This document shows, piece by piece, positions 1,324-21,015 of a DNA stretch of 64,000 nucleotides (positions are counted from its first letter, which is position 1; each line of letters opens with the position of its first letter). Position numbers and translations under genes: made by a program. The notes beneath the pieces were generated by a model. The model saw only the letters and a list, made by a program, of their open reading frames with translations. It did no database searches and had not been told where the DNA came from. This DNA comes from Ascidiella aspersa (lineage: Eukaryota), in NCBI GenBank assembly GCA_963924565.1, contig OZ004609.1, positions 27,342,001 through 27,406,000 of the forward strand, read 5' to 3'.

Positions 1324-3950
1324 AGCGCATGATCACATGTGCGCTTCTGATTGGACGCGTCGCGCGGCAAAGAGATTGTCTTCTCTTTTTTCTGTCCGCT
1401 GCGGCTGCCAATCTCATGACTCAAACTGCACTCATCAGGATGACGAACGCAGTACAACCGTGTTTGGAAATCTGGCCGTCTGCCATCGGAAATTAGTTAT
1501 TCATTCCTCGTGTAAGCCTCTTACTGTCTCACGAGCATTTCGCTACACATTAACTGGGTCGGGTTGTTGTTTGCGACATGTTTGTTGGATGATCCTCTGA
1601 CAACATTTAATTAGCTATTGTGAAATAAGTTTATTTTTCATTTATTTAGTTTTACGCTTCGGTTGCATTATTGGCCTAGGTAGGGGTATATTGGTGTTTT
1701 CTCGCACTTTCTATTGTTTTGAAATGAGTATTAAAGTAAAAATATTACTGCGACTATGTTGTTTAGATATCCATTTTCATTACGTTGCCCTGCTTTTACT
1801 TGTAGAAGATGAAAGCCATGGGCGCCAGTAGAAGTCAACTGTTTGACAACTAACGCATTAAAATATATCCAATTTTGATTTGAATTTTTTTGGAAACAAT
1901 AACGTCCATATGAAGCGTTTAAAGATGATTCATACCGGTTATCAAACTTCTGCGGGCGCCCTTGTACATATTTGTCCGACGTTCGAGTCTAACTTTATTT
2001 TACTGTACCTCATATCGGTGTCAGCGTGCCAACTGCGAATGGATATTAGATTCCATCACGTGAAATGCGACAATAAAACGTTGTAAATTGCGACGGGATC
2101 CGTCGGTCAACAAGTTTACGATGTAGTGTGCCCTGAACTGCAGGCCGTCAAACGAAAATGTCCTGTTTTTCTGCGCGCGCTCCTCGCCAAAACCACTCCC
2201 AGATCATTCGTCTTCTTTTCGAGTCAAACAGGACAAAAGAAAAGTTTTCCCAAACTTCTCACAAAACCTCGCTGTGCCAACATCATAAAAAATTCCCGAT
2301 GCCTAACTATGGTGTTTAGGCAAACAGCCGAGATGTTTATATTCGTGCTGCCGTATCGCAACCCACCTTAGAGCTAGTTGTCAGCAGCTTGCGAATATAC
2401 TCTAATTTGATACAGGTTGTTGTTGGTTTAAATTTTATCGCGTTTACGTCAAATTTGCACAGTTGGGTAATATATATGGTGAAATTTTTACTATGGAATA
2501 AGAGACTGTTAGTCGTCAGTTCAACACTTGCAAAGAAAACGGGTCTTTTGGATTAAAAACTGTATTTGCTTTATATTTCAGTTTGGTTTACAAATAAATT
2601 AAAACCATTAAATAATAAGGTACATGTTTGTAATGTCCGACAACGTCAAATCACAACCGATACGAGAACCAGCTGTCAGTACGATACTTTAAAATAGATA
2701 ACTATATACTCCCAAAAATTTAGGCCATGGTATAACAAACTCAGCTTTAACAAAAAATACTTTGTACTGGTCCAAACACAAGTTAAATCAGCTTAAACAA
2801 CGTTAATATGCGAACACAATTTTGTTTTCAGATGATTGTTCCGATAAACGGTATCGTCTTGTTTATAGGTATTATAGATTTAACATGTGTCGGAAATAAA
2901 TAGAAAGCCGTTTTACAATTTCCAGGTGAACATTTGATTACGAAATTTATGGAAGGAGACAAAAGTACATTTGAGTTATTTCCAATATGTGACAGTCTTT
3001 TATGCGTGAAACAGCACACTAAAAAATCCGCCTAAAAACACTAAAGAAGTCAGCTTGAAGGTATCGTAGTTTTAAAATTAGTACAAATCACTGCAATGTA
3101 TCGACACCGGGATTATGGTGCTATATATTTTTTGGCTGTTCATAGGACATCGTTATAGATTGTCGTCTGGATGTGGCCACACACCTAACGACACACGGCC
3201 CTTAAACTTTTGTAATAGATTACGAATATAACAGTAACCAAGGGCGGATAGTTATCAAGGCGGGTCCGGGATTTTTATTTGGGCGTGGCATGAATTTTTT
3301 TTTGTTATAACGTCACAAAAGCTACGTCGTAATATAACGTCATAAAACAACTAATATCAAAAGCACTAGAGGTTTTTCAGCGAAGTCGTACGTTAATGGC
3401 AGCAGAATTAAGTCTAATATCACAAAGGTCTAAGTTGGCAAAACTTTTAATATAAAAAGGCACGTGATGCAAGAAATTACAGCATTCGTAGTTTAATTTA
3501 ACGAAAATTGCACTTTATGTTTTTTACGTTAACACGGCGTGTAACATACTGTAGTATACATGGCGTCTTAGGGATGAATAGATTTTTTTTTTTCCATTTA
3601 TATAGTGAAAGTTAGAAAAAATATAGTTTTTAGGGCACGACCTAATGCTCCTATATAGATCCGCCTTGAACGTTAGTATATTGGCTTGAAAGTGTTTTCG
3701 CCTGGTTTCGGATCCGAAACGGCGCAACATTGGCGAGACATCGCAACGAGTTCGAAAAAACATGTTGTCGTACAACCTTACGTCATTTGCTCTTAACACC
3801 CATAACGCATTCCTCACTAATGTGGTTTTGTTTAAACTGTATAGAGTCTTTACCCGTTACCTAATCAAATAGGGTCGGTGCATCAGATCTTGGTAAAAGC
3901 ATCAGCGACGGATTAAAGTATACGGAGAGAATATACGTCACCGCTACGTC

Positions 3951-6900
3951 ATGACTGCATCGCAAGAGGAGGAGCGCCCTCAGTGGGACAACAAGGCCCA
4001 GTTTTTGCTCACCTGCATCGGATTTGCGGTGGGCCTCGGGAACGTATGGCGATTTCCCTATCAACTGCAGAGCAATGGTGGAGGTAAGAAGTGCTGTTTT
4101 CATTTTTAAACAGCAGTTAGAACATGGGTTCTTAGTCTGTGGGTCAAGGCCCCTGTTGGACCACATGAGCGTTTAAAGGTGGACCACAAAGCATTTGGAA
4201 AATTGTAAAGTTGGTGAACATTATAGTGTTATTCGTTGAATTCTTTAGTTCATTTTACAGTACATTCTCAACTCCTCAAAGGTTCGCATTAATAATTGCG
4301 TTATGTGTAGGTTAGTTTAAATATTCTTCTTTTTTCACATTGTGAAGTTATTCTTAATTTCTTACACATTACAGTTATGTAACCAATTTAAGCAGAACTT
4401 TATAAAGTAAGCCACATAATATTTTCAAAACCAAATAAGAACCCATCCCTGAGTTAGAATGTGATAAGGAATTTTTATAGTTAAATTCGAGGTGGCTAAG
4501 CACTTGTCGCCTGTTAAGTACCTTGCGCACAACATGGCAGTTTTCCAATAAAACGGATATCCATTGAAAAAATATCGGCCGTGTTGAAATCTATACAACT
4601 GATATTGCTTTGATCCTTTGAAGTCGACAAGATAACTTGTATTAAAGTGAGACAAAAGAAACATTTGCAAAAACCAATTTAAACACCAATGCCCCTCATG
4701 CTAACCATTTTTCTAGTCGCCGTTTTTTATATAAAAGGAACGTTTTGTTTAAGAGACGAGACCGTTAACGTTTTTAGGTATAAGTTCTCAATAGACGCCA
4801 TATTTAGGCAACTAGAAATTACAGCATGTTACGTTTCTCAATTATGACTTTTACTTTTTTCTAATTCAGTGAGGAAGAACTAAAACTTTCATCTGACAGG
4901 TGCCTTTCTAATTCCATATCTGATCATGTTGGTATTCGAGGGCTTCCCACTATTGTACCTTGAGCTGGCAGTCGGTCAATGGCTGAGACAGGGAAGCGTT
5001 GGCGCCTGGAAAAAGCTGAGCCGATACATGGTCGGTAAGTTGCCATCAATAACGCCTTTTTTGCAGCCGATAACACTGTCAGGGTGAGTCGGTTGACAAA
5101 ATACATCGATGTTCGTTAACATGCTGGGATGGCTGAATACCGTTATCTTAGTAGGTTTGCCTCTGCCAATAGCGTCCCTGTTGAGGCCTATTATAAAACA
5201 AGCCAAACTTGCATTGAAAGTTGTTCCAGTGAAGAAACTGATCTTTCTATTTGAACGAAACATCTTGTATATATCTTATTCGAACAACAGATCATATATT
5301 TTTGAACATTGCGTTTATTTGTCAACCTAGCCCACCTGGAGGTGTATCGACACATGTCAGGGGTAATGTCGATACATACGTGCACAGTAACATATTTCTG
5401 TCAAAAAGCGTCGCTCGTGCTGGCAATACAGCTATTTGAATAAATAAATTTAATGGTAGTGTTGGATGCTAGCTTTGCTGTTCATTGAATACTTAGCACT
5501 TAAAACTACCACCTTATTGACGACATATCGACATTTGTTAAACTGTATAAAGTAAGCAAAATTGACTGCTATTCTATCCAAAATCAATTACGTCAGTACC
5601 ACGAAAGGTGAAATAAACAAATCTTCAGGCTGAAACCTGCAGAGGCCATGTGAACTACAATATTAGGCCTTAAATGGTGACTTAAGAAGTGCAATTATAT
5701 TTTATGGTGTCTAAAAATCGTTGCATTGGACTACTATAATTAAATGAAATTCACACAATAATTTAGTGTCGGATTTCTACCAATACCAACTTAGTTTCAA
5801 ACGAATAGCAATGCCAACACCTGATGATACCCGGTATCAGCTTCGATCCGATATTACGCGACATTCCTTGTACCTTTCCGTATATTTACACAAAGAAGTT
5901 TAAGTGTGCTTTATATGCGTTTGCGCAGGTGTCGGTGTTTGCAGTTTGTTCGTGTCGTTGCTGGTCGGCATGTTCTACAATACGATCATCGCCTGGTGCA
6001 TTTGGTACCTCTGCAATTCCTTCCAGGTAAAGGCAAAACGCGAACAACGAATTCATGGCGCAGTAAAAAGGGACGCTGAATTTACGAGAGCAATGAACCT
6101 CCCAATATAAAGCAGTAAATTGGCGCAATAAAAAATTGCCATTACTTTGGAAACTGCATGTTAAACTCTTTAAAGAGCACATTTATTTAAACAGGCCCTT
6201 AATTATACATAAAATAAAATCAACCCACTATCAGAGGGGAACACAGGTGCCTTGGAATTTCTGGCCTTTTTAACTACGTAAATGCAAAATGTTTAGCGTC
6301 AGCGCTTATGTGGCTAGCCTACATTTCTGATGTCCTTTTTCAGCCCAAAGGTGTCATGCATCTCATCGTACCATTCAAAATAAAAGTTTGGCCGACTTAT
6401 AGTATATAAAGGCGTTTTTTCGCTTTGTGCGAATCTATAACTTTGTAATATAGCCTTTGTTTCGAAAGTAACACTTTTCCAACCTAATACAAAAAATAAA
6501 CAAACTGTGTGTTCTTAAGATTACTTTCTTATGGCGGCGCCACGTTTAGTTGTACCTTTGTGACGACACGTTTTGACGTAACATTGTGACGTTACTTTTG
6601 CGACGTCATGTTTTTACATAAAAAACGTAAATATGTGACGCCATATTAAAAAAAATTTAAATCGCACCCCTCACAACCAAAAATTGTAGATCCCGCGCCT
6701 CTCAACGCTGATAGGCAACCTCCAATCACAGAGGAAAAAACTCCTTTAACTTTTGACAGGAGCCGCTTCCGTGGAGCCGGTGCCCGGTGAACGCGACCGA
6801 CAACACATCGTACGTGGCCGAGTGCAGTGCATCGTCCAACACCGAGTACTACTGGTACCGCGTCTCCCTCAACATCTCGCCCGACATAGCCGAGGCCGGT

Positions 6901-9900
6901 GAAGTCCAGCTTCATCTACTCGCAGCACAGGTCCTCGCCTGGCTCATCGTGTGCCTCTGCGTCATTAAGGGCATCGCGTCATCGGGAAAGGTGAGTGAAC
7001 CCGCTTTGTCCGACCATGCGCCTATTCTTGCCGTAGTGTTTGCACGGCGCATCGCACGATTTCGGCAGGCTATAAATCAGCAGCGAAAATATATAGAAGG
7101 TTTATTGTCGCCCTGACGCTGCCAAGGCGCGGTGCTCCCGTCGGACTGAAAAACACGGCATCCGGCCCTTTTCTGGCTTAAGCCTTCTTTGTGTTTCGCA
7201 TCATATGCGACACGAAATAATAAAATTGAATTTTTGCTCCACAACCCGGTACTGCCTCATTGGCAACACACCCCCAAAGGTTCTAGGCCCTGAAAAAATT
7301 GGCAGGCAGCCCTCTTAAAAGCATATCAGGTATTTCAAGTTAGGCTGGTAGTGTGAATGAGCATTTCGAAGTAATTGTGATTTACTGCATCCCGAATTTT
7401 TTTTTTGAATTTTTAACGCCATTCCTGTATTTGTATTATCCACATATCGTGCTTTAATATGTTTTCAGTGCTCTATAATGTCTATTAAGGATATATGCAA
7501 TGAATAACTCCAAAAGCGTAAAATCCTTCTCGGCCTATTTTTAAAAGCAATTTACGTTGCGACCAATGACCAACAGCAGAAAAAAGCGACCGTTGAAAAA
7601 ATCGTTTTGAGCGTTGGCTCACACGAAAGTCAACAAAGGTGTGGAAAAATTTATTAAAAACTTAGAAAACTATTATGACAGGTTTGAACCATAAAAGTAC
7701 TGTGATGACAACGCACACAAAAAGCACAAAAATTTAGGTTAATTATTAAACGAAAACTGCCCTGCCACAGATGACAAAGCAGTTGGGATAATAGAAAGAG
7801 AAAGGAGGTTTCCATTTTTAGGAGCTTACCTTAAGGAACAGTTTGGCAGGAGATCACCGATAACATTTTTAGTGTTTATTACCACTGTAAACAACCCTTT
7901 TCGTTTAACGTCATCCGGCGATAGTCTGGATTTATTTAGTTTTCGCCTTCAATTGGACAACATTTCCCGGGGCTCGTCACATTTATGTTTTTATTTTAGG
8001 AAAATAACGTTGGACCTCTGAAGCTATTTCTTTAGGTGATGTTTATTTACCAATAGCTGTTAAACCAATTTGGCCATTTTTTCAAACAAGCAAATTATTT
8101 CAAAACAGTCATGTTGTCCAAATTGATGATAGACTTTATTTATCTTTTTAAAATTTTTTTAAAATATACCATAACAAATGGTAGGTTTTGACAAACGTAT
8201 CTGGAAGTTGACTTTTATTTCCCAAACTTGCTCCCCTGAATTGGCAAAGCAGCTGGCGTAAAACCTAATTAAATATTGGAAACATGGCCATAAATACGTA
8301 TACTGATTCTTATAAATAGAGTCGTGCAATGTGAAATTTGGTGGAATAGCACTATAACAAACATCTTCAAAAAACATTAAACATTACACCCTAAACAAAT
8401 TGAGGCATAAATTTAATAGTACTTTTTTGTCATGTTTAGGTGGTGTACTTTACGGCAACATTTCCATACGTGGTGATGTTTTGTTTTCTGATTCGCGGAC
8501 TAACCCTTCCTGGGTCCAGCACCGGACTCTCCTACCTATTTAATCCGGACGTAAGTGCTATGTCTCCACCTAGCGACAAAAAATATGTATTGGGTTCGCT
8601 GTTTAACGATAAAAAAACCTTGCCATTTACTACGCTTAGTTAAACGTTAAAAAAACACTCGAAGCCAAGACATTTAAATTGCTAGTACATTGCGAGATTA
8701 CCACCCCCTAATTAGCCTGTTGTAGGGAATAACACATTTACTGCAATAAAACCAAGAAGGCCGATCAATTTGGTTAAAGTCGGTTATGAGCTTATCAAGG
8801 CCTGGTTAAGTGACACCGAAGTAAAAACATAATCTAAAACATGCATTTTCATTTCTGATAGACGTTTCTTTCATGCACGCCCAAACAAAAGCAGCCAGCA
8901 GGCTACAAACTGCCAATTACCGTAAAGAATGAAAAACGTGTCAGATCTCTTTATTTCTGTGGCGTTTAACACAGGCGTTTAAAAATGTTAGGCACATCAG
9001 CAACGAGTAACCTATCCGCTTTTTCACCAGCTGAGCGTCCTGTCCGATCCGCAAATTTGGCTAACGGCGGCTACGCAGATATTCTTCTCGCTGAGTCTGG
9101 CCTTCGGCGGCATGATCGCCTTTTCGAGCTACAACAGCAAGGACAGTGACGTGGAGCTGGATACTGCCATCGTGTGCGTCACGAACAGCGTCACAAGCTT
9201 GCTGGCCAGTGTCGTCATATTCTCTGTACTCGGCTTCAAGGCGACCGTCGACTTCGAGGAATGCGCCAACCAGTGAGTTTGGCAGGTTTTTATACCACAC
9301 AATGAAGTAAAACATAAGTGCCGGCTGTTTATTGGTCTCATAGAGGTAATAATACCACCCGTGTTGTTGTTTTTTCAGAAACATTCAGACCATGCTTGAC
9401 CACTACGATTTACCGGAGGGAAACATTACGCTTGACACCTACCAGCAGTTTCTTGACGACAACAATATAACGATCGTCGACGGGGTGCACACCCTGCTAG
9501 ATATGCCCGAGTGCAGTGTCACCAAAAATTTGGATAACGTAAGAACCAATGCTCTTAGAGTCTAGACTCTAGAGTCCTAAAATACTCTAGACTTAGCGTA
9601 CAAAAAAGGTTTCAATTCACAAATTTAGGCGTGTCTTCTACAATGCGCGAAAGTAAGGCTTTTTTAGTTTTGTGCCAGTTAGCCAGAATTGTAATGACTC
9701 AAGTCAATGACTTAACTTGTGGTTTCCAGCCTAGGGGTCGCCCTCCATAGGGGTCGCAAGCGGTTTTCAGGGGGTCGCCGTCTACTGATAAAAAAAATTT
9801 ACAACAAAACGAAATACAATGTAAACTAAAAATTTAGCAGTTGAAGAGCAATGCCACCTCCAGCCATGGCATTTATACACAATTGAATCCTCTATAACAA

Positions 9901-12640
9901 TATTTTTCCCTATAGTCTATGCACGGATCTGTCAATGTCAAAGTCAAAATGGCGAATTAATCAACATCATCTTCAGTTATGTTAAAAGTGTGTATCGAAA
10001 CGTCCGTTTTAAGATGATTCGATTTACTTAACGTTTTTGACTTTGGCATTCCTGACTAAGTAACATATTTCCCTATTTAAATGATTCAGAGGAAAACGAT
10101 ATTATATAAAAACACAATATAAAAATTACTGCTATAAAAATCATTTAATCTTGAGTAAGATGACTTTAATTTTAGACTTTAAAACCTTGTATGAATTCTT
10201 ATTGGTTTGTTAAGGTATTTTACAAGATTACGGCAGCCAATTTTTTGTTGCTATCACGTAACCACATTTTTGGTTTTGAGGATAAAAGATTCTTATGACA
10301 GAAATAAACCTTAAGCCTTTTACTTAGTTACTTATATAGCGTAATTTCGGTAATTCTTTCCAATATTTAATACCTGTTCAGAAATTTAAACATTTTGCAA
10401 AAGGTAAAAAGATTTATTCTGATTTACGTGTTATACGCCAAAATTGGAGGGTCACGTATGTCATCAAAAACTGGAAAGAGTGTCGCGACAACAAAAAGAT
10501 TGGGAACCATTGATATATCCTCTTTTGTTTGATGACCTTTGGCCGATTAACCAAGTAAGAATTCCTCGCACAGAATAGAAAAACACCGCAAAATAGAAAT
10601 GGCTCCATCTTATTCAAAGCCGTAAAGCTAATATAAACCCTTTTCAGGGTGCGTCGGGAACCGGGTTGGCTTTCATTGTTTTCGCCGACGCCATCTTGGA
10701 AATGCCGGGGTCGCCGTTCTGGGCGATTCTCTTCTTCCTGATGCTGCTTACGCTGGGTCTCGACTCCATGTTCGGCAATATTGAGGGCGTCCTCACTCCT
10801 CTTAATGATCTCGGTCTCACCAAAAGGTTCAGGAATGAATACGTCGTCAGTAAGTTTTCGCAATATTTTAGCTTGTCGATTGGTGCTCCAATAACGCGTA
10901 GCACATATGTCATACAATTGCTTAGAGCAGAGTTTCGCAACCATTTAAAATGTCTCACTGAGACAATATTAAAATTTTGCCTGTGGGAAACTTGTATTTA
11001 TGTACGTGGTGGTAATTGAATGAATTGGTTATCGTCCGTATTTGTCGTGATGGTGAAGAAACTATTTTTAAAACCCCTTCTTGCCTTTTAATCTATTTTC
11101 ATGCCTGATACCCGGGTTTTCAAACATGCAGCCTATATAGCGTTTAGATTAGTCATTATCTTTGTAGTGTACTGGCATTTTAAAGTGGTATTTTCAAAAT
11201 AAATTTTTGATTCAAAAAATAATACAAGATCAAATATTTAAAAATATATAATTCGCTCTAGTGAAATCGTTTATCTTTTTTATAAAAAAATATTTAAACA
11301 TTTATCCTTTAACAAAACAAATAATTTTGATCGTGCATTTAATTTTGATTTTACCACATTTTATACTGGTTTTAATTTTTTGTTTTAAAATTCAGCCTAT
11401 ATTTGTAGTTGGAATTATAATTTTTTCCTTCCTGGTGTCTTTGACGTTTATCATACAATCCGGCAACTACTGGCTGGATATTTTCAACGAATACGCTGGT
11501 TCGTTGCCACTCCTTATCATTGCCTTCTTCGAGCTGATTACGGTCGGATGGATTTACAGATACAGCAAGTAAGCCAAACGCATTTAGAACAGGCTATGCT
11601 ATAAATAAACATAATTATTGCAACAAAATTTGGACGTTTCATTTTTTACGTATGTTGCTTGTTTTTTGACAAAAATGCCGTGCAGGGCTTTAACTTACGT
11701 TGACTTCACTGGGCGCTCATGATTAAATTCGACTGAGCAGTTTTCCTTTAACTTTGACAAATTTGCATTATCACAGGGATTTAAAAGAAAATTTTTTTTA
11801 CCAATCACCTTTTTTAGTTTTGAAAGGGAACTGCGCGCTATCTTACCACCACGAACCGGAATAGTTCGTAAAGCATTGGGTTGGTTCTGGTGGGCGACAA
11901 TTCCGATCATCAGCCCATTGCTACTCTTGGCTGTGTTTATCTATTATCTTTACGACATTGCCACGAAGCCTTCATCTTATTCAGCGTGGCAACCCGAGGT
12001 ATGTCGTAAATAGTTATTTACAATTCAAATTAGTAATTAAAGCACTATTTCGATTGAATAATAGTGTCTCGAGTCTAATTTTCTATACAATACATTGTAT
12101 TTTCAGGGCGGCTACTAGTTCTGTATCAAATTAAACAAATGCTGCATCAGAAATAAAAATCAATATCGATAGTAAACTCGCTTACCTGATTGACTTTTAG
12201 CTGATAATATTTGGCATTATAAGTTATAAGTATAGGCTAACTGCATCTAATCTTTCATTGTGTTGTCTCAGAACAATGTTACGCAGACTTTTTCAAACCG
12301 CAAAACTTACATGTTTTTTATTCAAACACCGAGTTATTTTTAACAGGGAATGAACGTGGTCAAGCCTTTTCCCGAGTTCGTGGTCGGCGTCAGCGCCCTA
12401 ATTACTCTGGTCTGCACGATTTGGATTCCGATCGGCGCCCTGTACGAGCTGGTAAAGTATCTAATGCGTCGCAAAAACCCGACCAGTGCATTACGGATGG
12501 ACGCAAACAACGGACAGCCAGCCGAAGTTCAGAGTAAAGACGTCGGAATCTACAACGAAAGCTTCCAGGGCAGGGCAAGCACCAAACCGCAGACCAGCTT
12601 TCAGTCGAACGAAAAAGACATACCCTACATTGACCAGTAG
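3951..12640 (+). CDS. SLC6 neutral amino acid transporter, SLC6A18/SLC6A19/SLC6A20 (B0AT/SIT1)-like, 11 coding exons, ~648 aa
   Basis: Exons 3951-4083, 4900-5034, 5929-6026, 6760-6990, 8440-8550, 9031-9272, 9379-9538, 10648-10849, 11409-11568, 11818-11998, 12347-12640; all GT-AG and in phase. SNF-family motifs: [99 protein letters not shown]. The long Cys-flanked EL4 insert (ECANQ...ECSV) is typical of the B0AT/SIT subfamily. Confidence 0.93.
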
Positions 12641-13049: not shown

Positions 13050-13137
13050 CATGCAAGCAGGGCAGACTAGAAAAACTTCGAACTCAGGACCTCCGGTCAA
13101 GCCGGGACCGTCGCTCTACCAACTGAGCTATGCAGGC
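13050..13137 (-). mobile_element. tRNA-derived SINE-like head (Pol III A/B boxes), truncated
   Basis: Minus strand reads GCCTGCATAGCTCAGTTGGTAGAGCGACGGTCCCGGCTTGACCGGAGGTCCTGAGTTCGAA. It contains an A box/D-arm (GCTC..GAGC), a 5-bp anticodon-like stem (CGGTC/GACCG) and B box GAGTTCGAA, but no T-stem closure or acceptor 3' strand. A related copy lies at 28991. Confidence 0.7.
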
Positions 13138-13248
13138 TCAGAAGGGAACGAGTCGAGAAACAACCATACGCCAATGCTTACTCACTCTGTTAGTACAAGC
13201 AACTTCATGGTTGTTTCTCGACTCGTTCCCTTCTGAGCCTGCATAGCT
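13126..13248. repeat. Perfect 42-bp inverted repeat (hairpin) with 39-nt loop
   Basis: 13126-13167 AGCTATGCAGGCTCAGAAGGGAACGAGTCGAGAAACAACCAT is the exact reverse complement of 13207-13248. Confidence 0.95.
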
Positions 13249-13523: not shown

Positions 13524-14120
13524 CAGTGGTTCTTAACCTTTTTTCAGCCGCGCCCCCCTTTGGTAATTTTCTCATGCCTTGCGCCCCCCTATGAAAATAT
13601 TTCGACATTTTGCAATTAAATATCACTGAGAAAACAGGAAAATAGTGAAGGGTGTCGTTGGTCGCGCGAAGCGCGAAATACTTTGAGTTTTATTTGGTCG
13701 AATTGGCTAAACTGCAACCGAAGAGGCGTTTCACATTGGGCACTCAACAAATTGCGCGAGCTCGACACATTGATTTTATCGAGCTGATTTTGACAAACGT
13801 GTTGCGAGGGCATTAACTCCACAGTTGTAAGAGTTATGATGTCGAGCGCAAAAAATGTCAAGCGCAAATATTAAACATTGCGTTACCGTGTTTCAAAAGA
13901 TGTAACGACACACAATACAACGGCAATATTGCAAAAACAATATAGTTTTTGCAGTTTTAATGTTAAAGTTGGCAAAAAACAGAGTTTGTATGTAGGAATT
14001 ATGCCTAACCCAAACGAAACCATTAAAATCACTGCAAAAAGTTAAAATATTGAAGTCGAGCTCGCGCCCCCTTAGAATTCCTTGGCCCCCCCCCCCCCCC
14101 CCCCCCCCCCCATGTTAACA
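13524..14120. mobile_element. hAT (Charlie-like) MITE, right terminus lost; contains a C26 homopolymer
   Basis: Left end CAGTGGTTCTTAACC is near-identical to the terminus of the intact element at 59351. GCGCCCCC subterminal motifs occur at both ends, with a poly-C run at 14086-14111. No right TIR or TSD was found. Confidence 0.55.
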
Positions 14121-14273
14121 TACAACTTCGACATTTGACTATCAGCTTATCATAAATAAAAATTGACATTTTAAGCCTTGTATTGCCCATTGTTGTTGCT
14201 TGGTATGACATAACAATAAGGAATGTTTGCCTGAGTTTAATTTTTGTAAAATACGAAATTCAGCAAAAATATA

Positions 14274-17200
14274 ATGAGAGACCTGAATATATCTGCGCGT
14301 ATATTTTTCAACGAAGAAGACCAGCTGAACGTGGACATATGGGGGCAACTCGTCACCATATTTACCGTGTTCGACGTCATGATGATTTACGTTATTATGT
14401 CGTTTTTAGCTGTCGTCAAAGACATAAAATGGAACATAGAGGTTTGTTTAATTTTTTTCTATTAAGTCGTTGAAATAACAGCATTATAAACAGTATAATG
14501 TTTGGTTTGTAATTTTAATTAATTCACAGAATTAAGATATTTAAAAAAATGTTTATCAATGTTGGTACCTGAAAACTTTTTTGTAAGATCCTACAAATTG
14601 TTTTAAAAGAGTTCTAGTATGAATCAGGTACTAATATTTATTTAAAAAGAAAAATAATGGCCATTGTGCCAAACACCAAAAAATATTACGGAAACAAACT
14701 GGTGGTATTACGTTGAATTGAAAAACACTCAAAAGCAGGTTGGTTGAATTATTTTAGAAAAGGTAAAATGTTACCTGTCAGACTGTAGTGTACATGTCTT
14801 AGTTTTGTCATCTATTTCCCAACGCAGTTTGTTAGGTTAATTTGACCGTTTTGATTGGCCAGATTGTGCTACACGTTAAAATAACTCATACATATTTTTC
14901 TTGAATATACGAATCACACTAAAAAAGCTGTTCAAAAACGTAATTGTCAAGTTAATTTTATGATCCTTAAACTACCGTCCATAAATGATTTTCCAGGAAT
15001 CCACGAAACTTATTTTAAGTTCAATAACTAATAAATTATATAGAAGCCAGACAAAGACATACATTTGCATTGAAAACGCACCGGAACATACAGATCTCTC
15101 TAATGTGATGATAACCGATTTTTGCGCTGCAAACTAAAGTCGTTGAAAGCATAGTTATGCTGAATTAACGAAATGTATATTAAATCCGGCAAACTGGCAA
15201 TCTGCACGTTGAGTCGTCGAGGCAGTTAGTCGTGCCCCAATGTCCCCCATCATGTGGCAACATACAACGATGATAAATCATTTAACAGTTAATTGTGAGC
15301 AGTAAATGTTATGCATATGACTACCGATTTGTAGGTTGGGGCAATTTTAAAACCGTATTTTTTTTTCTTGTTTTACCAGCATATGGGTCCTTAAGATTTA
15401 TGAAACGAAAGGTGTCCGTCAGGTGAAAAGGTTTAAAGATCACTTGTCTAGCGCTTGTTTGGGGGGGCATGACAATTTTTTTAATGGGGTGACGCCAAGA
15501 AGTTCGTTCAAAATGTGACGTCATAAAATTATATCTAAACGTGACGTCATAAAAAAGTTACGTCATGAACACCACACAGTTGGTTTATTTTGCTAAATTG
15601 AAGATTGGACAGATGTTACCTTCAATACAGAAGCTACAACGATGTTATAGATTCTCATTTCTGACATGACACAAAACCTCCTTATATCGTTTAAGTTGTC
15701 CAAACTTATATATTGAAAATAAATTCGTCTAATTCTAAATAAAGTGATCAGGTGGCAGGATATAATAATATATAGTGCCACCTGATTTTGGAGGGAAATA
15801 AAATAGATATATTAAATAGATTCTCGCGGAGCGCGAAAATTTTTGGCATTTTTGTTTAAAATAGGCAAAAAATACAGTTATGGGCCTTGGCCACTTTTAA
15901 ATCCGCCCGGACACTTGTAAAATCTGTCCGCTCACTTGTAAACGCAATATTTTTGTTCCAGTGTCAGCCAGCGTTCCTACCCAAGCGGCCGCCGCGTGGC
16001 TTCCGGCTCTACGCCATTCTACTGGAGACGGGCGCGAGTCCGGCGGGCGGCACAACGTCACGCGTCTTTCTGCGCATGTGCGGCAAGCTGACTACGTCAC
16101 CGGCATTCACACTAACCTGCACCAGCGAAGACCGCAAGGGCGGCAGTCGACGACTGTTCGGCAGCAACAACAAGGACCTGTTCATTGTCGCGCTGCCGCA
16201 CTACCTCGGCTCGATCGAGGCCTTTGAAGTGGTGAACGACCGTCGCGGCGAATGCCCACCCTGGTAAGTCAATAAGGCAAAACTCAAGATAAATAAACTA
16301 ATTTATAAAACCAATTGCTCAGTAACAAAAATCATTTCAAACAAAGTCATTGGTCATAAAGATTTAAGTCGAGTTAAGCCATTTGGCCGGAAGTCAATTC
16401 AAGTTACTTTTCCCAAAAGACTAAGTCAAGTCACTTGAAAAACAGCGTCTAGTCAAGTCATTTGAGAACAGTGACTTAAGTCATGTGGTTGACTTAATTC
16501 ATTACAACACTGCTCCCACCTATCGTAGGTTTAATTTTTAAGATATGTGTCAGTTTGCACACAAGATCGATGTTGTATAGGTTTATACGTTTTCGGATAA
16601 GGCAGCATGCATTTCTGGTACTGGTTTAAATTTGTCGTTGTGTAGGCCCACGCTTTGGCCGTTGTGACCCTGTTTAAACAGTGAAAAATTGTTCGACTCA
16701 AGACATTTCGATAACTGACAATTCAGACAGCAAAATGAAATCGCAACACTCAGTTTGCAAATGGAAATCATAACATTTTTCGCTATAAATCGAATAAATG
16801 TATTAGCCCACTTCGTATTTTGTATCGGCAAAATGATATTTATATAAAGCGTAAGGGTATAAGCCAAATATGAGCACGGTTGTTTCAGGAAAGAAAAATG
16901 AACACGGTTGTTTGAGGAACGCCGGGCCGGTAAAAGGCATAAAAATAGTTTGATCACCCCTGACGTATTCAAAAAGCCGCTTTGTCGTACTGACGCATCG
17001 TACTCCGTCTTTTTCGCAGGTTTCTGCGCAGCATTCGAGTAATGTGCCTCGACAACCGTAAGTGCTGGAAGAGCAGGGTGGGCGCCTGGTTGCGTGGAGA
17101 CAAGACGCCCTACCGCATTAGGGCAGACATGATCGGCGCGCTGAGCACCAGAAACTACCTCGTTAAGGTTATACAGCAGAACCACAACTGGCTGTTTCCT

Positions 17201-19806
17201 TGGTACAGGTAAGTCGGCAAAAAACTTTTGCGCGGGATTACAAACTCTAAAGGGTCGATAAGGCTTGGACGTACGTTTTCTGATGCTTTTAAACCAAAAA
17301 AACTAAATTTGGTAATAAAACCTTTTTTCCGTAAGGTATAATGACGTGAAATATATTTTCGATATTTAAAACAGTGCTGCGGCGTCAAGTCCGACTCCCG
17401 AGCTTCGAGTCCGACTCCGGCCAAATGTTCGATTTCGCCGAGTCCCGATTACGGCTCCTACTATACTGCCTGTATTTCACCCATTTACGTACGGTAACTA
17501 AACCAAGGTAGATATTCAGCAATCCACCCCTAGGGAATCAAACAACTCATGTACATACAATACATGGGTGGAAAACATTTCCCTTTTGCTATTCGATCTT
17601 TACAATTTACCGTGTGGGGCCTTCATAGTTTTAAATTTGGTACTGCGCATGTCGGACTCGGGATTCGGGTAGTCTTTCTCGAGTTCCGAATCCGACTCCA
17701 GCAAAACAAACCAACTCCGGAAAGTCTCGATTCCAACTCCGCAGCCCTGATTCAAAACTTACCTACAGTTTGAATACACTTTAGGCCTACTGGACAAAAA
17801 TATGTTAGCGCTATTACGAAAACAAAACTTTCGTTCCTTAATTGACATTTCCTTTATAACGTAAAAAATCGAAGCGTTGTTTTTAAAAACAAGCTTAAGT
17901 TCAACCTGCACACAAAACGATTAAAAGCAATCAAATCAGTTGCATGGCCTTTGTTAACAACATTATGCAGGCGTTAAAATGTTTTTAGATATTTGTACCT
18001 CTAACCTGAACTTTGATTTGTGGAGTTTTTATACCATATGTCGTTCTAAATATCTATATATACATTTCCAACAACACTTTACAGTATGGTGAAAATACAA
18101 GGAAAATATTGCTTAACAATGCTAAGAAAAAAGTGTTTGATAACCCCTGCCAAGGCATTTATTTCGACCTAAACCAGCGTGTTTGCGTCCACAGAGCCCT
18201 GGGCTCGTCGTTCACGTGCTTCCAGCGAGTGGTCATCCACTGGACGGCGACCAACGCGGCACTGACCATCGCGCATTTCATGTCCTACAACCCGGAGAAG
18301 CTCTTCAACATCACCGAGGGCAAAGTGGCAACGCCCATCTTCAACGCCAACCAGGTGGTGGCCGCAGGTCTGGCGGCCGCGGCGGGCGGCGTCCTGACCG
18401 GGGCGGTTCTGCGCATTGCGGCGCGTCTGGCGGCCGGGGGCACAAAGTGGACGCGCGTGGACGACAAGGACGACTTCGCGCACCTAATGGAAGGACTACA
18501 GTACGCGGACGGCGCTGTAGTGCGCGCACCGGTCGTCAACGAAGATTGTGACGCGCGGTACCGGCTCACGCCGCGCCAGATACGCGTCCTGCACGAGATC
18601 ACGCGCTGCGGGGAGGAGGCCTGCCATGGAAAGGACATGCTGAACAGGCCCGAGTGCCCGCCGGAGAAGTCGTGCGCCTTTCGGACGGAGCGCCCAGTTG
18701 TGCCAACGAGCTCCGAGAGCGAAGCGCCTGCTGATCAGGTCCTTGAAGAAAATTTGGAGCAGAACAAGGATGCGAACGGCGCTTCTACTGATTCTGACAC
18801 AGAATCAAGTGCGTCGCCGCCAGAGCAGGATCGCGGCTATAGATACAGCATACAGGTCGGAATGAAGGATTTGTGGAACAAAACGTTGGGAAGCATCGCG
18901 ATGGCTGAGCCCAACGAGTCGCACGAAGACCCGGCCAATGATGTTGAGCAAACCAACAGCAACGCGCCGCTCCCTTCACAGCGGCTACGCAAGTTCTCCG
19001 CGAGGAAACCGCCCAAAACCAGGAAGGTTCAAAGGTTGAACAACGTGGTCCCGTCGGTGTCGGCTCGCGTCGATTCTTCAACCTCGCTTGAATCGAGGGT
19101 GTCCGGCGGCGATCGTTCAAACTTGGCTGGGGAAGGGTCGAAATCGGGCGGCGACGCGTCCAACAAATTAGATCGTGGGGAAATGCACGAGTACGACTCC
19201 CTTTCTGAGGGCGAGTCTGATCAGGAGATAACCACTCGATCTGCCAAGACCGAGGCCGAGCTCGACTTGATAAGAAGACCAGCGGATGTGTACGAGACCG
19301 CTCCGAATTGGGACGATCAGTTTAAGGTCTGGGTCCAAAGCACAGTAGGCGGCGATGAACATCACAGAGCCCTTTTGGAACGGTACGATTGTACCATCTT
19401 TCCGGCGGGCTGCTGCTTCAGCAAAAACCATGAGACGGTTATAACTGGGGCCATTCAGAACTACGTAAACGAAGAAGAGCACGCCCCGCCTGGCCAAGTT
19501 CTCTTTTCAGGCCTTCCAACAATGCTGGCAGGTTTGGTGGCACTTCTAGGACTAGTGATCTCCTTCGGTGGCGTTGGATTTGCGATTTACCAGCGCTTTT
19601 TCTTGCCGAACTCAGACTCTCTTATATTTCTGTATATAGTCTTGTTAGTTCTCGTGTTGCAACCAGTCCTTTCCACAGCCGACGCAGCCAGCTGGGCTTT
19701 TGCTGCAACGTGGGCTCGAAGAAGAAGGGTGTTGCAAGCAAGAAAAGATATTGCAAAGATGTTGTACGATGATGGCTGTACAGTTACTACTGATCCAAGT
19801 ATTTAG
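14274..19806 (+). CDS. Polycystin-1 (PKD1/PKD1L)-related membrane protein: TM1 + PLAT/LH2 + TM2-TM5 only, ~756 aa, 4 exons
   Basis: Exons 14274-14441, 15962-16263, 17020-17208, 18195-19806 (GT-AG, phases consistent, 2271 nt). TM1 (VTIFTVFDVMMIYVIMSFLAVVKD). PLAT signature YAILLETG...GTTSRVFLRMCG...LFGSNNKDLF...LGSIEAFEVVNDRRGECPPWFLRSIRV...AWL. PKD1-family motif HNWLFPWYRALGSSFTCFQR. Two hydrophobic segments, a long low-complexity loop, then LPTMLAGLVALLGLVISFGGVGFAIY...IFLYIVLLVLVLQP (TM4/5) and stop, with AATAAA at ~19820. The first exon and start codon are the least certain parts. Confidence 0.78.
16330..16512. mobile_element. Fragment of a dispersed element with CAAGTC/GACTTG subterminal repeats
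   Basis: Dense AAGTCA/GACTT motifs ending in ...TTACAACACTG. Similar motif clusters occur at ~9690-9720, 20100-20230, 25755-25945, 36755-36850 and 49990-50090. Confidence 0.5.
17372..17749. mobile_element. hAT-like MITE with GACTCC subterminal repeats (intron of PKD1-like gene)
   Basis: TIRs CAGTGCTGCGG / CCGCAGCCCTG; flanks ATTTAAAA / ATTCAAAA (7/8 TSD match); many CCGACTCC/GAGTC motifs. Confidence 0.72.
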
Positions 19807-20433
19807 TAATAATTTTTCAAATAAACAATTACACAATTCACACTGTCTTTTATTATTGTTATTGTAAGCTGTTCCTGTCTCGTTTCGGATAAACAATTTA
19901 TTTTTATTATAATTTCTTTCAGGACATCTACCATAGCGTGGTTAATATCGGCGAATCGTCATTAAAATGCAAACGAAAGTTTCATCGAATTGAAGCATTC
20001 CTTATGGACGATACTTTTTCAACTTTTTTACGAATATATCTTACGGATGGCGACGTCATCAGTTTTTCCTTAACGTCTTTTCTAAGATTTGTTACAGGCT
20101 TTTGGAATTGACTTGCTCTAATTACGACATAACTGGGACTTTATTTGTTATTTATGCAAGGAGACTTGACTTGGATTTAAGTTATTTTACAAACGCTTGA
20201 CTAGGACTTACGACTAGTTTACAACACGTAATAATACGTTATGGTAAACCGCTATATGTACATAAAAAAAATTCATTTTCCAAAATAGTTATGGTAAAAT
20301 GGGTGGTTTGAAAAATTATAGAGTTTCTTTTCACTAAACAAAACCAAGGGAAATATCACAATATTCATTTATTAGTTGCAAAAGCAACTATAAAATGCTC
20401 ACAAACAAATAATAACCACAAATGGTAAAACAG

Positions 20434-21015
20434 CTACTTCTTTTTCAGTTGACTTTCCTCAAGCATTTTCTGTTTTTTTAATTCCTTTTGGATTTCCGCT
20501 TTTTCTTGTTGTTGTTTTAAATACTTTTCATATTTAACAGGGTTTATGTCCCGCACCACATGAACCCCCATTGTCCAACATTGGTGAGTAATAAGCTCGC
20601 ACATTTCTTTCATTGAAATACTGCGATATTTTAAATTGTCCTCCTGCATTTTCACCTTGGCTATTTCGTAAACATGTTTGTAAGTAATTTTGCCACTGAC
20701 ATAATAAGATCGGAAGCCACCCTTCGCAAGGCCAGCTGCCTGGAGAATCAAATAAGACTGACTCGGCTCACGCAATTCAATCTGAAAGCGCTTGCCCTGC
20801 ACATGTATTCGCACAGGTATAGGAATGCCAGGCTTGTAGTCTTTGGTTAAATTGTTAAATTCCTCAACAAACTTGGCAGCAGGCAAGCCATAGGAACCTA
20901 AGGTACTTCCAAGTGGGGGCCCAGTTGTTGCGCCACCACTGGGTATGATTGCCCTGATGATATTGGGGTGAAATATTTTCTTGACTTGTTGGGTAGTCTT
21001 GCTAAGCTTAGACAT
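20434..21015 (-). CDS. MRPL11: Mitochondrial ribosomal protein L11 (uL11m), uninterrupted CDS, ~193 aa
   Basis: uL11 motifs IIPSGGATTGPPLGSTLGSYGL, YKPGIPIPVRI, GKITYKHVYEIAKVK. ATG at 21015 (MSKLSK...) is preceded by an acceptor-like ttcttattaacag; the ORF track's start at 21021 is a TTG. Confidence 0.92.
   Translation of the reverse strand: MSKLSKTTQQVKKIFHPNIIRAIIPSGGATTGPPLGSTLGSYGLPAAKFVEEFNNLTKDYKPGIPIPVRIHVQGKRFQIELREPSQSYLILQAAGLAKGGFRSYYVSGKITYKHVYEIAKVKMQEDNLKYRSISMKEMCELITHQCWTMGVHVVRDINPVKYEKYLKQQQEKAEIQKELKKQKMLEESQLKKK

Follow-up and report, generated by a model that had tools for sequence, protein, structure and literature searches.

A stand-alone ascidian gene for a protein homologous to the S1-PLAT-S5 membrane unit of polycystin-1

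Can the first five membrane helices of polycystin-1 (PC1), together with the PLAT domain that follows the first of them, exist as a protein of their own? The question is raised by a gene at positions 14274-19806 of a 64,000-nucleotide (nt) stretch of Ascidiella aspersa DNA (assembly GCA_963924565.1, contig OZ004609.1, positions 27,342,001 to 27,406,000, forward strand), which is called the window here and whose numbering is used unless stated otherwise. A first-pass annotation, made from the letters of the window only, had proposed that this gene encodes the N-terminal membrane unit of polycystin-1 with neither the GPS-bearing ectodomain nor the channel domain. We consider the best explanation, with a probability of about 0.8, to be a complete, expressed, single-copy ascidian gene for a five-pass protein of about 750 residues, which is homologous to S1-PLAT-S2-S5 of PC1 and to nothing else in PC1. 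The gene stands alone, without a GAIN/GPS/REJ ectodomain, a TOP domain, the S6-S11 channel half or a long C-terminal tail.

The gene model lies on the plus strand with exons at 14274-14441, 15962-16263, 17020-17208 and 18195-19806. Rebuilt from the raw sequence, in which the window contains no N, it has 2271 nt, corresponding to 756 codons and a TAG stop, and the clean four-exon open reading frame of 756 residues claimed at first pass was reproduced exactly. All three introns are of the GT..AG type. RNA evidence was taken from run X3, a stranded library with the same species label, of which about 6% of one data set was used and reads were mapped over 13900-19890. The three predicted joints were confirmed exactly by 14, 4 and 15 spliced reads, in intron order, all of them on the strand expected for a plus-strand mRNA (first mate on the minus strand), and RNA depth of about 15 was sustained through exon 4 to the end of the mapped region at 19890. 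The polyadenylation signal AATAAA, also anticipated, is present at 19820-19825, 14 nt past the stop. The gene is single-copy in its own genome and has no close paralogue.

Orthologues were found in Ciona intestinalis (XP_078482713.1, "uncharacterized protein LOC144743273", 739 residues), Clavelina lepadiformis ("PLAT domain-containing protein", 773 residues) and Styela clava (LOC120333411, 800 residues), where they are likewise single-copy; these genera represent the three ascidian orders. The truncated architecture, whose conservation in related species the first-pass annotation had proposed to check, is therefore shared, with proteins of 739-800 residues in three annotated genomes. An exhaustive phmmer search with exon 4 over 1.84 billion representatives returned 14 homologues, none longer than 802 residues, most of which are last-exon open frames called on contigs. 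Word-indexed protein searches with the Ciona protein and with a three-sequence profile found nothing outside ascidians, although they were length-limited and restricted to 8000 candidates and so do not show absence elsewhere.

For domain content, the window was searched exon by exon and the full-length database orthologues served as proxies for the whole protein. PLAT (PF01477) was the only Pfam family in the three orthologues, scoring 29.1, 27.5 and 38.1 bits (cut-off 23) and lying at about residues 82-230, right after transmembrane helix 1 (TM1). No GPS match was obtained in any orthologue at E values up to 1, there were no REJ, PKD-repeat or lectin matches in the window exons or the three orthologues, PKD_channel (PF08016) matched neither the window exons nor the orthologues, and Polycystin_dom was absent from the three full-length orthologues. 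The expectation of PLAT without GPS, REJ or PKD_channel thus holds in the Pfam scan of these three proteins.

Comparison of the Ciona protein with all PDB sequences by phmmer, at E values up to 10, returned only polycystin-1 chains (E 2e-8); lipoxygenases, lipases and other PLAT proteins were not matched in this search. The alignment starts at the end of TM1, crosses PLAT and the linker, and reaches the W..W.R(P)..S.F(T/S)..QR motif that opens S2. A three-sequence profile with full-length rows matched polycystin-1 in the PDB at 4.3e-11 and extended into S2, and a profile composed mostly of last-exon fragments, from which the N-terminal columns were dropped, gave noise matches only. In the window itself, the HxW...SxFTxxQR motif reported at first pass was found as H-N-W...S-S-F-T-C-F-Q-R across 17183-18228, and exon 3 can be aligned with the part of polycystin-1 that separates PLAT from S2. 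In the ESM Atlas, the neighbours by language model were clusters of PKD1L2 and PKD1L3, with scores of 0.90 and 0.85.

Since the sequence similarity of TM2-TM5 to polycystin-1 was undetectable, a fold comparison was made. AlphaFold2 models of the Ciona protein had a mean predicted local distance difference test (pLDDT) score of 56-58 and a predicted template modelling (pTM) score of 0.46-0.54, with a disordered loop and five transmembrane helices at pLDDT 80-94. The PC1 structure was released in August 2018, after the AlphaFold2 training cut-off, so it should not have influenced the model. With the first model, Foldseek reached TM-scores no higher than 0.11-0.15 and listed lipoxygenases amid the polycystin-1 entries, and rescoring of the Foldseek candidates with VIA-align placed twelve polycystin-1 entries on top. 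The best of these (Z 14.6, root-mean-square deviation (rmsd) 4.0 Å, 206 residues) pairs model residues 36-714 with PC1 residues 3071-3623, and matches confined to PLAT reached a Z of about 10. Polycystin-1 also came first in a scan of 48,161 representative chains that did not depend on Foldseek (Z 13.6, rmsd 3.4 Å over 186 residues, with model 39-701 paired to PC1 3074-3610). The runner-up, at Z 8.2, matched PLAT only, and just two chains reached Z 8. The aligned PC1 residues are those from S1 to S5, and the PC1 stalk comprises residues 3049-3074 (PMC9171645). The claimed homology of TM1-PLAT-TM2-5 to the N-terminal membrane unit of polycystin-1 is thus borne out by both the PDB sequence match and the fold match, and the proposed superposition on PKD1 TM1-5, carried out with the model of the Ciona orthologue, ranks at the top of all chains scanned.

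Several points weigh against this reading. TM2-TM5 alone have no detectable sequence similarity to polycystin-1, and the case for their homology depends on a model whose overall confidence is moderate (mean pLDDT 58, pTM 0.54). The window exons taken singly gave no Pfam match, PLAT included, since exons 2 and 3 each encode only a part of that domain. With regard to a partnership with channels, the stand-alone protein is without the known elements of PC1-PKD2 pairing, namely a channel half at the fourth pore position plus the coiled coil of the C-terminus.

Exon structure was compared at five loci, four contigs (L001, L002, L003 and L004) and the Ciona chromosome (L005). All four exons occur in the same order on L001, L003, L004 and L005, whereas on L002 only exons 3 and 4 were above the threshold used. 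On L001 every splice site falls at the same codon position as in the window, and the position of the exon-1 donor is also shared by L003, L004 and Ciona. Exon 2 shares 66-83% identity with its counterparts in four other genomes, exons 2 and 3 of the window are 65-76% identical to the PLAT region of the orthologues, and exon 4 shows 30-38% identity in the four other genomes, compared to the 66-83% of PLAT.

Between genomes, the proportion of non-synonymous differences (pN) in the PLAT exons was 0.13-0.23 against a proportion of synonymous differences (pS) of 0.71-0.98. Synonymous sites were saturated in 9 of 10 pairs, and the single ratio of non-synonymous to synonymous substitution rates (dN/dS) that could be computed was 0.066, from counts pooled over exons. 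Within the species, reads and contigs revealed 8 synonymous variants, including a TAG to TAA change at the stop, versus 5 non-synonymous ones, and none disrupted the frame. In the individual used for RNA, 19601 T>G changes F to C in the short linker between TM4 and TM5 in about half of the reads, and 19806 G>A turns the TAG stop into TAA in 4 of 14 reads. These counts indicate that the PLAT exons are under strong purifying selection, and the gene is functional and expressed; the first-pass view that it is not a pseudogene is upheld by its expression and by low pN against saturated synonymous sites, and the dN/dS check for constraint gave the same answer in its one computable pair. The G+C content of the coding exons is 52% (18001-20000) versus about 35% in the surroundings, and the high exon G+C probably inflates synonymous differences to AT-rich orthologues too.

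Exon 1 (14274-14441), whose donor carries the 14 spliced reads and which has a homologous exon in L001, L003, L004 and L005, encodes the start codon, an N-terminal tail of 22 residues and TM1 (14340-14417, by hydropathy). The tail, which is 20-70 residues long in relatives and has no signal peptide, contains an N-I-S sequon at 14286-14294 and a conserved R-I-x-F-x-x-E-[DE] block at 14295-14321; an N-I-S/T sequon is found in the tail of most species, and the block is conserved as R-I-x-F-x-x-E-E. TM1 is flanked by acidic residues on its N-terminal side and by basic ones on its C-terminal side, a charge distribution that, taken with the sequon, fits an N-terminus placed outside and TM1 as a signal-anchor, like the post-GPS stalk of PC1; the tail is probably N-glycosylated. 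This topology would put PLAT, the TM3-TM4 loop and the Arg-rich C-terminus in the cytosol, where PC1 has them too, with an Arg cluster holding the C-terminus inside.

Exon 2 (15962-16263), both of whose splice sites are confirmed by reads, covers the first three quarters of PLAT, preceded by the linker that follows TM1. Exon 3 (17020-17208), with 4 and 15 reads at its junctions, completes PLAT with its last strands and goes on to an amphipathic linker helix and the H-x-W...W-Y motif (17183-17206). Exon 4 (18195-19806), present as a single copy in the genome, comprises the S-x-F-T-x-x-Q-R motif with TM2 (18205-18288), TM3 (18355-18435), the cytosolic loop, TM4 (19513-19599), TM5 with its R-R-R-R anchor (19612-19728), a short tail and the TAG stop. 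Of the five transmembrane helices that had been expected, TM1, TM3, TM4 and TM5 were detected by hydropathy, and TM2, though weakly hydrophobic, is a confident helix in the AlphaFold model of the Ciona orthologue (pLDDT 86-94).

The loop between TM3 and TM4 had been described as a low-complexity segment of about 330 residues. This description has to be revised, as the loop is about 360 residues long and several of its blocks are conserved across species. Just after TM3 lies a juxtamembrane block, R-V-D-D-K-D-D-F-x-H-L (18454-18489), which is nearly invariant across orthologues, and it is followed by a conserved His/Cys-rich block, H-x3-C-x4-C ... C-x5-6-C (18589-18675), which might be a site of metal binding or acylation. 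A V-P-x-V-S-A-R block is also conserved in this loop. The best conserved stretch of exon 4, found in 14 of 14 homologues, precedes TM4 at 19192-19386 and reads Y-D-S-L-S-E-x-E-S-D, then K-S-A-R-T, R-R-P, A-P-x-W and H-H...R-Y; its acidic serine cluster, Y-D-S-L-S-E-x-E-S-D, could be taken to resemble the acidic sorting signals of the CK2 type.

The same genome also contains PKD1-like genes of the usual architecture. At least four loci have PLAT and PKD_channel matches collinear on one strand, 9-19 kb apart, at C1:32.87-32.88, C1:18.97-18.99, C2:33.72-33.73 and C2:33.88-33.90 Mb, and these are ordinary PKD1-like genes. Since such genes are present, the stand-alone gene is an additional, reduced member of the family and not a replacement. 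Its origin may lie in a PKD1-like paralogue from which both flanks disappeared before the split of the three ascidian orders. Nine PKD_channel loci were found in all, the four collinear ones and others at C8:21.88, C4:14.72 (ambiguous), C9:13.35, C3:17.44 and C8:20.94 Mb. The locus at C8:21.88 Mb was considered as an orphan PKD1 channel half and rejected, as its intronless frame of 804 codons (C8:21878453-21880867, plus strand; L006 1454-3868) matches Ank_2, Ion_trans and, weakly, PKD_channel, and belongs to an ankyrin-repeat TRP-type channel, not a polycystin. No orphan PKD1-type channel half that would complete a split polycystin was found among the PKD_channel loci analysed, in a search that was not exhaustive. 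Two clusters of many PLAT-matching exons, at C1:23654930-23686209 (minus strand) and C4:30022407-30067403 (plus strand), are probably LOXHD1-like multi-PLAT genes.

What could such a protein do? Because it has no pore half, it cannot conduct ions. By analogy with PC1, we tentatively propose, at somewhat less than even odds, that it is a non-pore accessory or adaptor subunit acting on TRPP-type channels. PLAT would dock onto acidic inner-leaflet lipids, the acidic serine cluster and the Cys/His block of the loop would govern sorting or partner binding, and the S1-S5 bundle would pack sideways against TRPP-type channels, PKD2-like or PKD1-like, tuning their folding, trafficking or gating. Human PC1 can still build a channel with PC2 after removal of S1-S5, though current and surface protein are reduced, and the authors of that study describe what S1-S5 do as open (PMC6832002); the auxiliary-subunit proposal parallels this drop in current and surface protein. 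A broader version, in which S1-PLAT-S5 of PC1 is an autonomous module that was freed in ascidians to serve in trans as an auxiliary subunit for TRPP channel delivery or gating, appears unlikely, if worth stating.

The alternative that survives best, possible though rather doubtful, is that the protein works independently of any channel in membrane lipid sensing or trafficking. The helical bundle, possibly in an endomembrane, would then only anchor PLAT and the loop, which would sense or organise acidic lipids or Ca2+, or recruit cytosolic partners. Such a role would fit the ranking of conservation, with PLAT at 66-83% well above exon 4 at 30-38%, the conserved acidic-serine and Cys/His blocks of the loop, the absence of every known PC1-PKD2 coupling element, and the failure to find an adjacent or obvious orphan channel half among the channel loci analysed. 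It accounts less well for the conservation of the transmembrane helices and junctions, and for an S1-S5 arrangement kept as in PC1, which goes beyond the needs of a mere anchor.

An incomplete gene model, in which the five-helix unit belongs to a longer PKD1-like transcript with flanking exons that are distant or joined in other tissues, is very improbable. The RNA reads cover a small share of one data set, and a rare upstream junction could be hidden; an AG dinucleotide at 14262-14263, 10 nt before the start codon, could also be taken for an acceptor. Against this, RNA depth is 0.55 over 14100-14299 and 12.8 over 14300-14499, which places the transcript start close to the ATG, and no spliced joint left exon 4 or either end of the gene in the run X3 reads over 13900-19890. 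An in-frame stop lies 24 nt 5' of the ATG in the window and 6-75 nt 5' of the start codon in 5 of 5 genomes, and at the other end a stop follows TM5 in every homologue, mostly within 10-35 residues and in one case after about 70. Three intron-aware annotations give proteins of 739-800 residues. A better reading of the AG is that a non-coding leader may be trans-spliced to it. Trans-splicing of such leaders is common in tunicates, and a CAG lies at most 25 nt 5' of the ATG in 4 of 5 genomes (the window, L003, L004 and L005 of Ciona; L001 is the exception), which together with the abrupt onset of RNA suggests that a leader is added here; none of the loose ends listed for run X3 bore a leader.

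The neighbouring genes bear on the same point. Upstream on the plus strand is an SLC6 gene (Pfam SNF) with its stop at 12640, and downstream the coding sequence of a convergent MRPL11 gene (Ribosomal_L11_N and Ribosomal_L11) ends at 20434, 628 nt past the stop of the PLAT gene, as the first-pass annotation had placed them (it gave about 630 nt for the latter). MRPL11 is also the next downstream gene, convergent and 0.4-6 kb away, in four other genomes (three contigs and Ciona). The upstream neighbour varies, being SLC6 in the window and, in Ciona, an ML-domain gene that ends 764 nt upstream, and hidden upstream exons are hard to reconcile with this difference. The earlier argument that there is no local room for GPS or REJ exons stands, as a neighbouring gene lies too close to the ATG both in the window and in Ciona, and the absence of the GPS ectodomain and of the channel half is supported by the lack of joints out of the gene, the in-frame stops 5' of the ATG and orthologues that contain PLAT only.

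A PLAT membrane protein with no specific kinship to polycystin-1, which gained PLAT independently and has helices that resemble S1-S5 by chance, is just as improbable: exon 4 alone matches no polycystin by sequence and, according to the fold tool's own note, helical bundles can reach a Z near 13 by chance, but polycystin-1 was the sole PLAT protein matched in the PDB, the alignment exceeds PLAT on both sides, into TM1 and through W..W.R...S.FT..QR into S2, the fold match is collinear over S1-S5 and exceeds that of the next chain by 5 Z units, and PC1 likewise has its long cytosolic loop placed between helices 3 and 4.

Other features of the surroundings may be noted. Two tandem SLC6 genes seem to be present on the plus strand, at 214-1323 and 3951-12640; the first is represented by C-terminal exons at the start of the window, and the second, which has the Pfam support, opens with a typical N-V-W-R-F-P-Y exon at 3951-4109. 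A perfect inverted repeat of 42 nt with a 39-nt spacer lies at 13126-13248, between the SLC6 stop and the start of the PLAT gene. Very high-copy repeats occur at 13900-14099, 16300-16499 (intron 2) and 17300-17900 (intron 3), where DNA word depth is 3,000-92,000 versus about 100-140 in the flanks, and RNA reads fall there on both strands, many of them with loose ends. Beyond MRPL11, a gene for a proteasome-type AAA ATPase is syntenic in two relatives (L001 17094-18389 and L002 21330-21650).

Most dominant polycystic kidney disease results from mutations in PC1. What its first five helices and PLAT contribute is unsettled; for channel function with PC2, the last six are enough. A conserved, expressed gene of exactly S1-PLAT-S5 argues that this unit folds and works alone. 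If the auxiliary-subunit reading is true, the gene would provide a first handle on the function of the N-terminal membrane domain of PC1. Ciona is genetically tractable, with knockouts and reporter genes being routine, and with a protein of only about 750 residues, structure determination, lipid binding, a partner search and a knockout are feasible, which offers a natural route to a part of a kidney-disease protein whose role is unsettled. The gene also extends the modularity of the PKD1 family to the loss of the whole ectodomain and GPS, besides the known losses of the channel half.

Among known systems, the most distant are soluble PLAT proteins such as plant PLAT1 and PLAT enzymes such as lipoxygenases and lipases. 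They share the PLAT beta-sandwich (Z 7-10 to the PLAT of lipoxygenase and lipase), but they are not embedded in the membrane and none was matched by sequence. Sea-urchin SpREJ1 and SpREJ2 are PKD1-family proteins with 1 or 2 transmembrane helices (PMC1934368). Like the stand-alone protein, they are natural family members without the large transmembrane and channel region; they are, however, trimmed only at the C-terminal side and keep the REJ/GPS ectodomain, whereas here the membrane unit is found without an ectodomain.

Closer still is s-Themis-A of Ciona, a sperm self-sterility receptor, which has HVR, REJ, GPS and LH2 domains and five transmembrane helices but no C-terminal PKD channel (PMC9265791, PMC7018956). 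Both are ascidian PKD1 relatives with LH2/PLAT and five helices and without a PKD channel. In s-Themis-A these are joined to a large hypervariable/REJ/GPS ectodomain, in contrast to the tail of 22 residues here, and the present protein is strongly conserved, not hypervariable. The s-Themis-A gene also has a v-Themis gene nested antisense in its first intron; no such partner was seen in intron 1 of the PLAT gene, where run X3 gave no minus-strand RNA (first-mate-on-plus depth 0) and only short open reading frames occur. Loss of the channel half in the PKD1 family is thus already known from s-Themis-A, SpREJ1 and SpREJ2, all of which retain the REJ/GPS ectodomain. In the literature searched, we found no description of a protein that lacks the ectodomain and GPS site as well as the channel half, and databases label the orthologues "uncharacterized" or "PLAT domain-containing".

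PC1 itself (PDB 6A70, 8Z6B and related entries) offers the fullest likeness, with an outward tail as short as the stalk, S1, a cytosolic PLAT, W..W.R...S.FT..QR, S2-S3, a long cytosolic loop and S4-S5 following each other in the same order. Unlike PC1, the stand-alone gene has no GAIN/GPS, no REJ/PKD/lectin ectodomain, no TOP, no S6-S11, and no C-terminal coiled coil or G-protein tail; its product has about 750 residues against about 4300 in PC1, and its loop motifs are specific to its own family. Homologous to PC1's N-terminal membrane domain, the stand-alone protein departs from three family-defining features, the GPS, the REJ or other ectodomain, and the eleven transmembrane helices with a channel.

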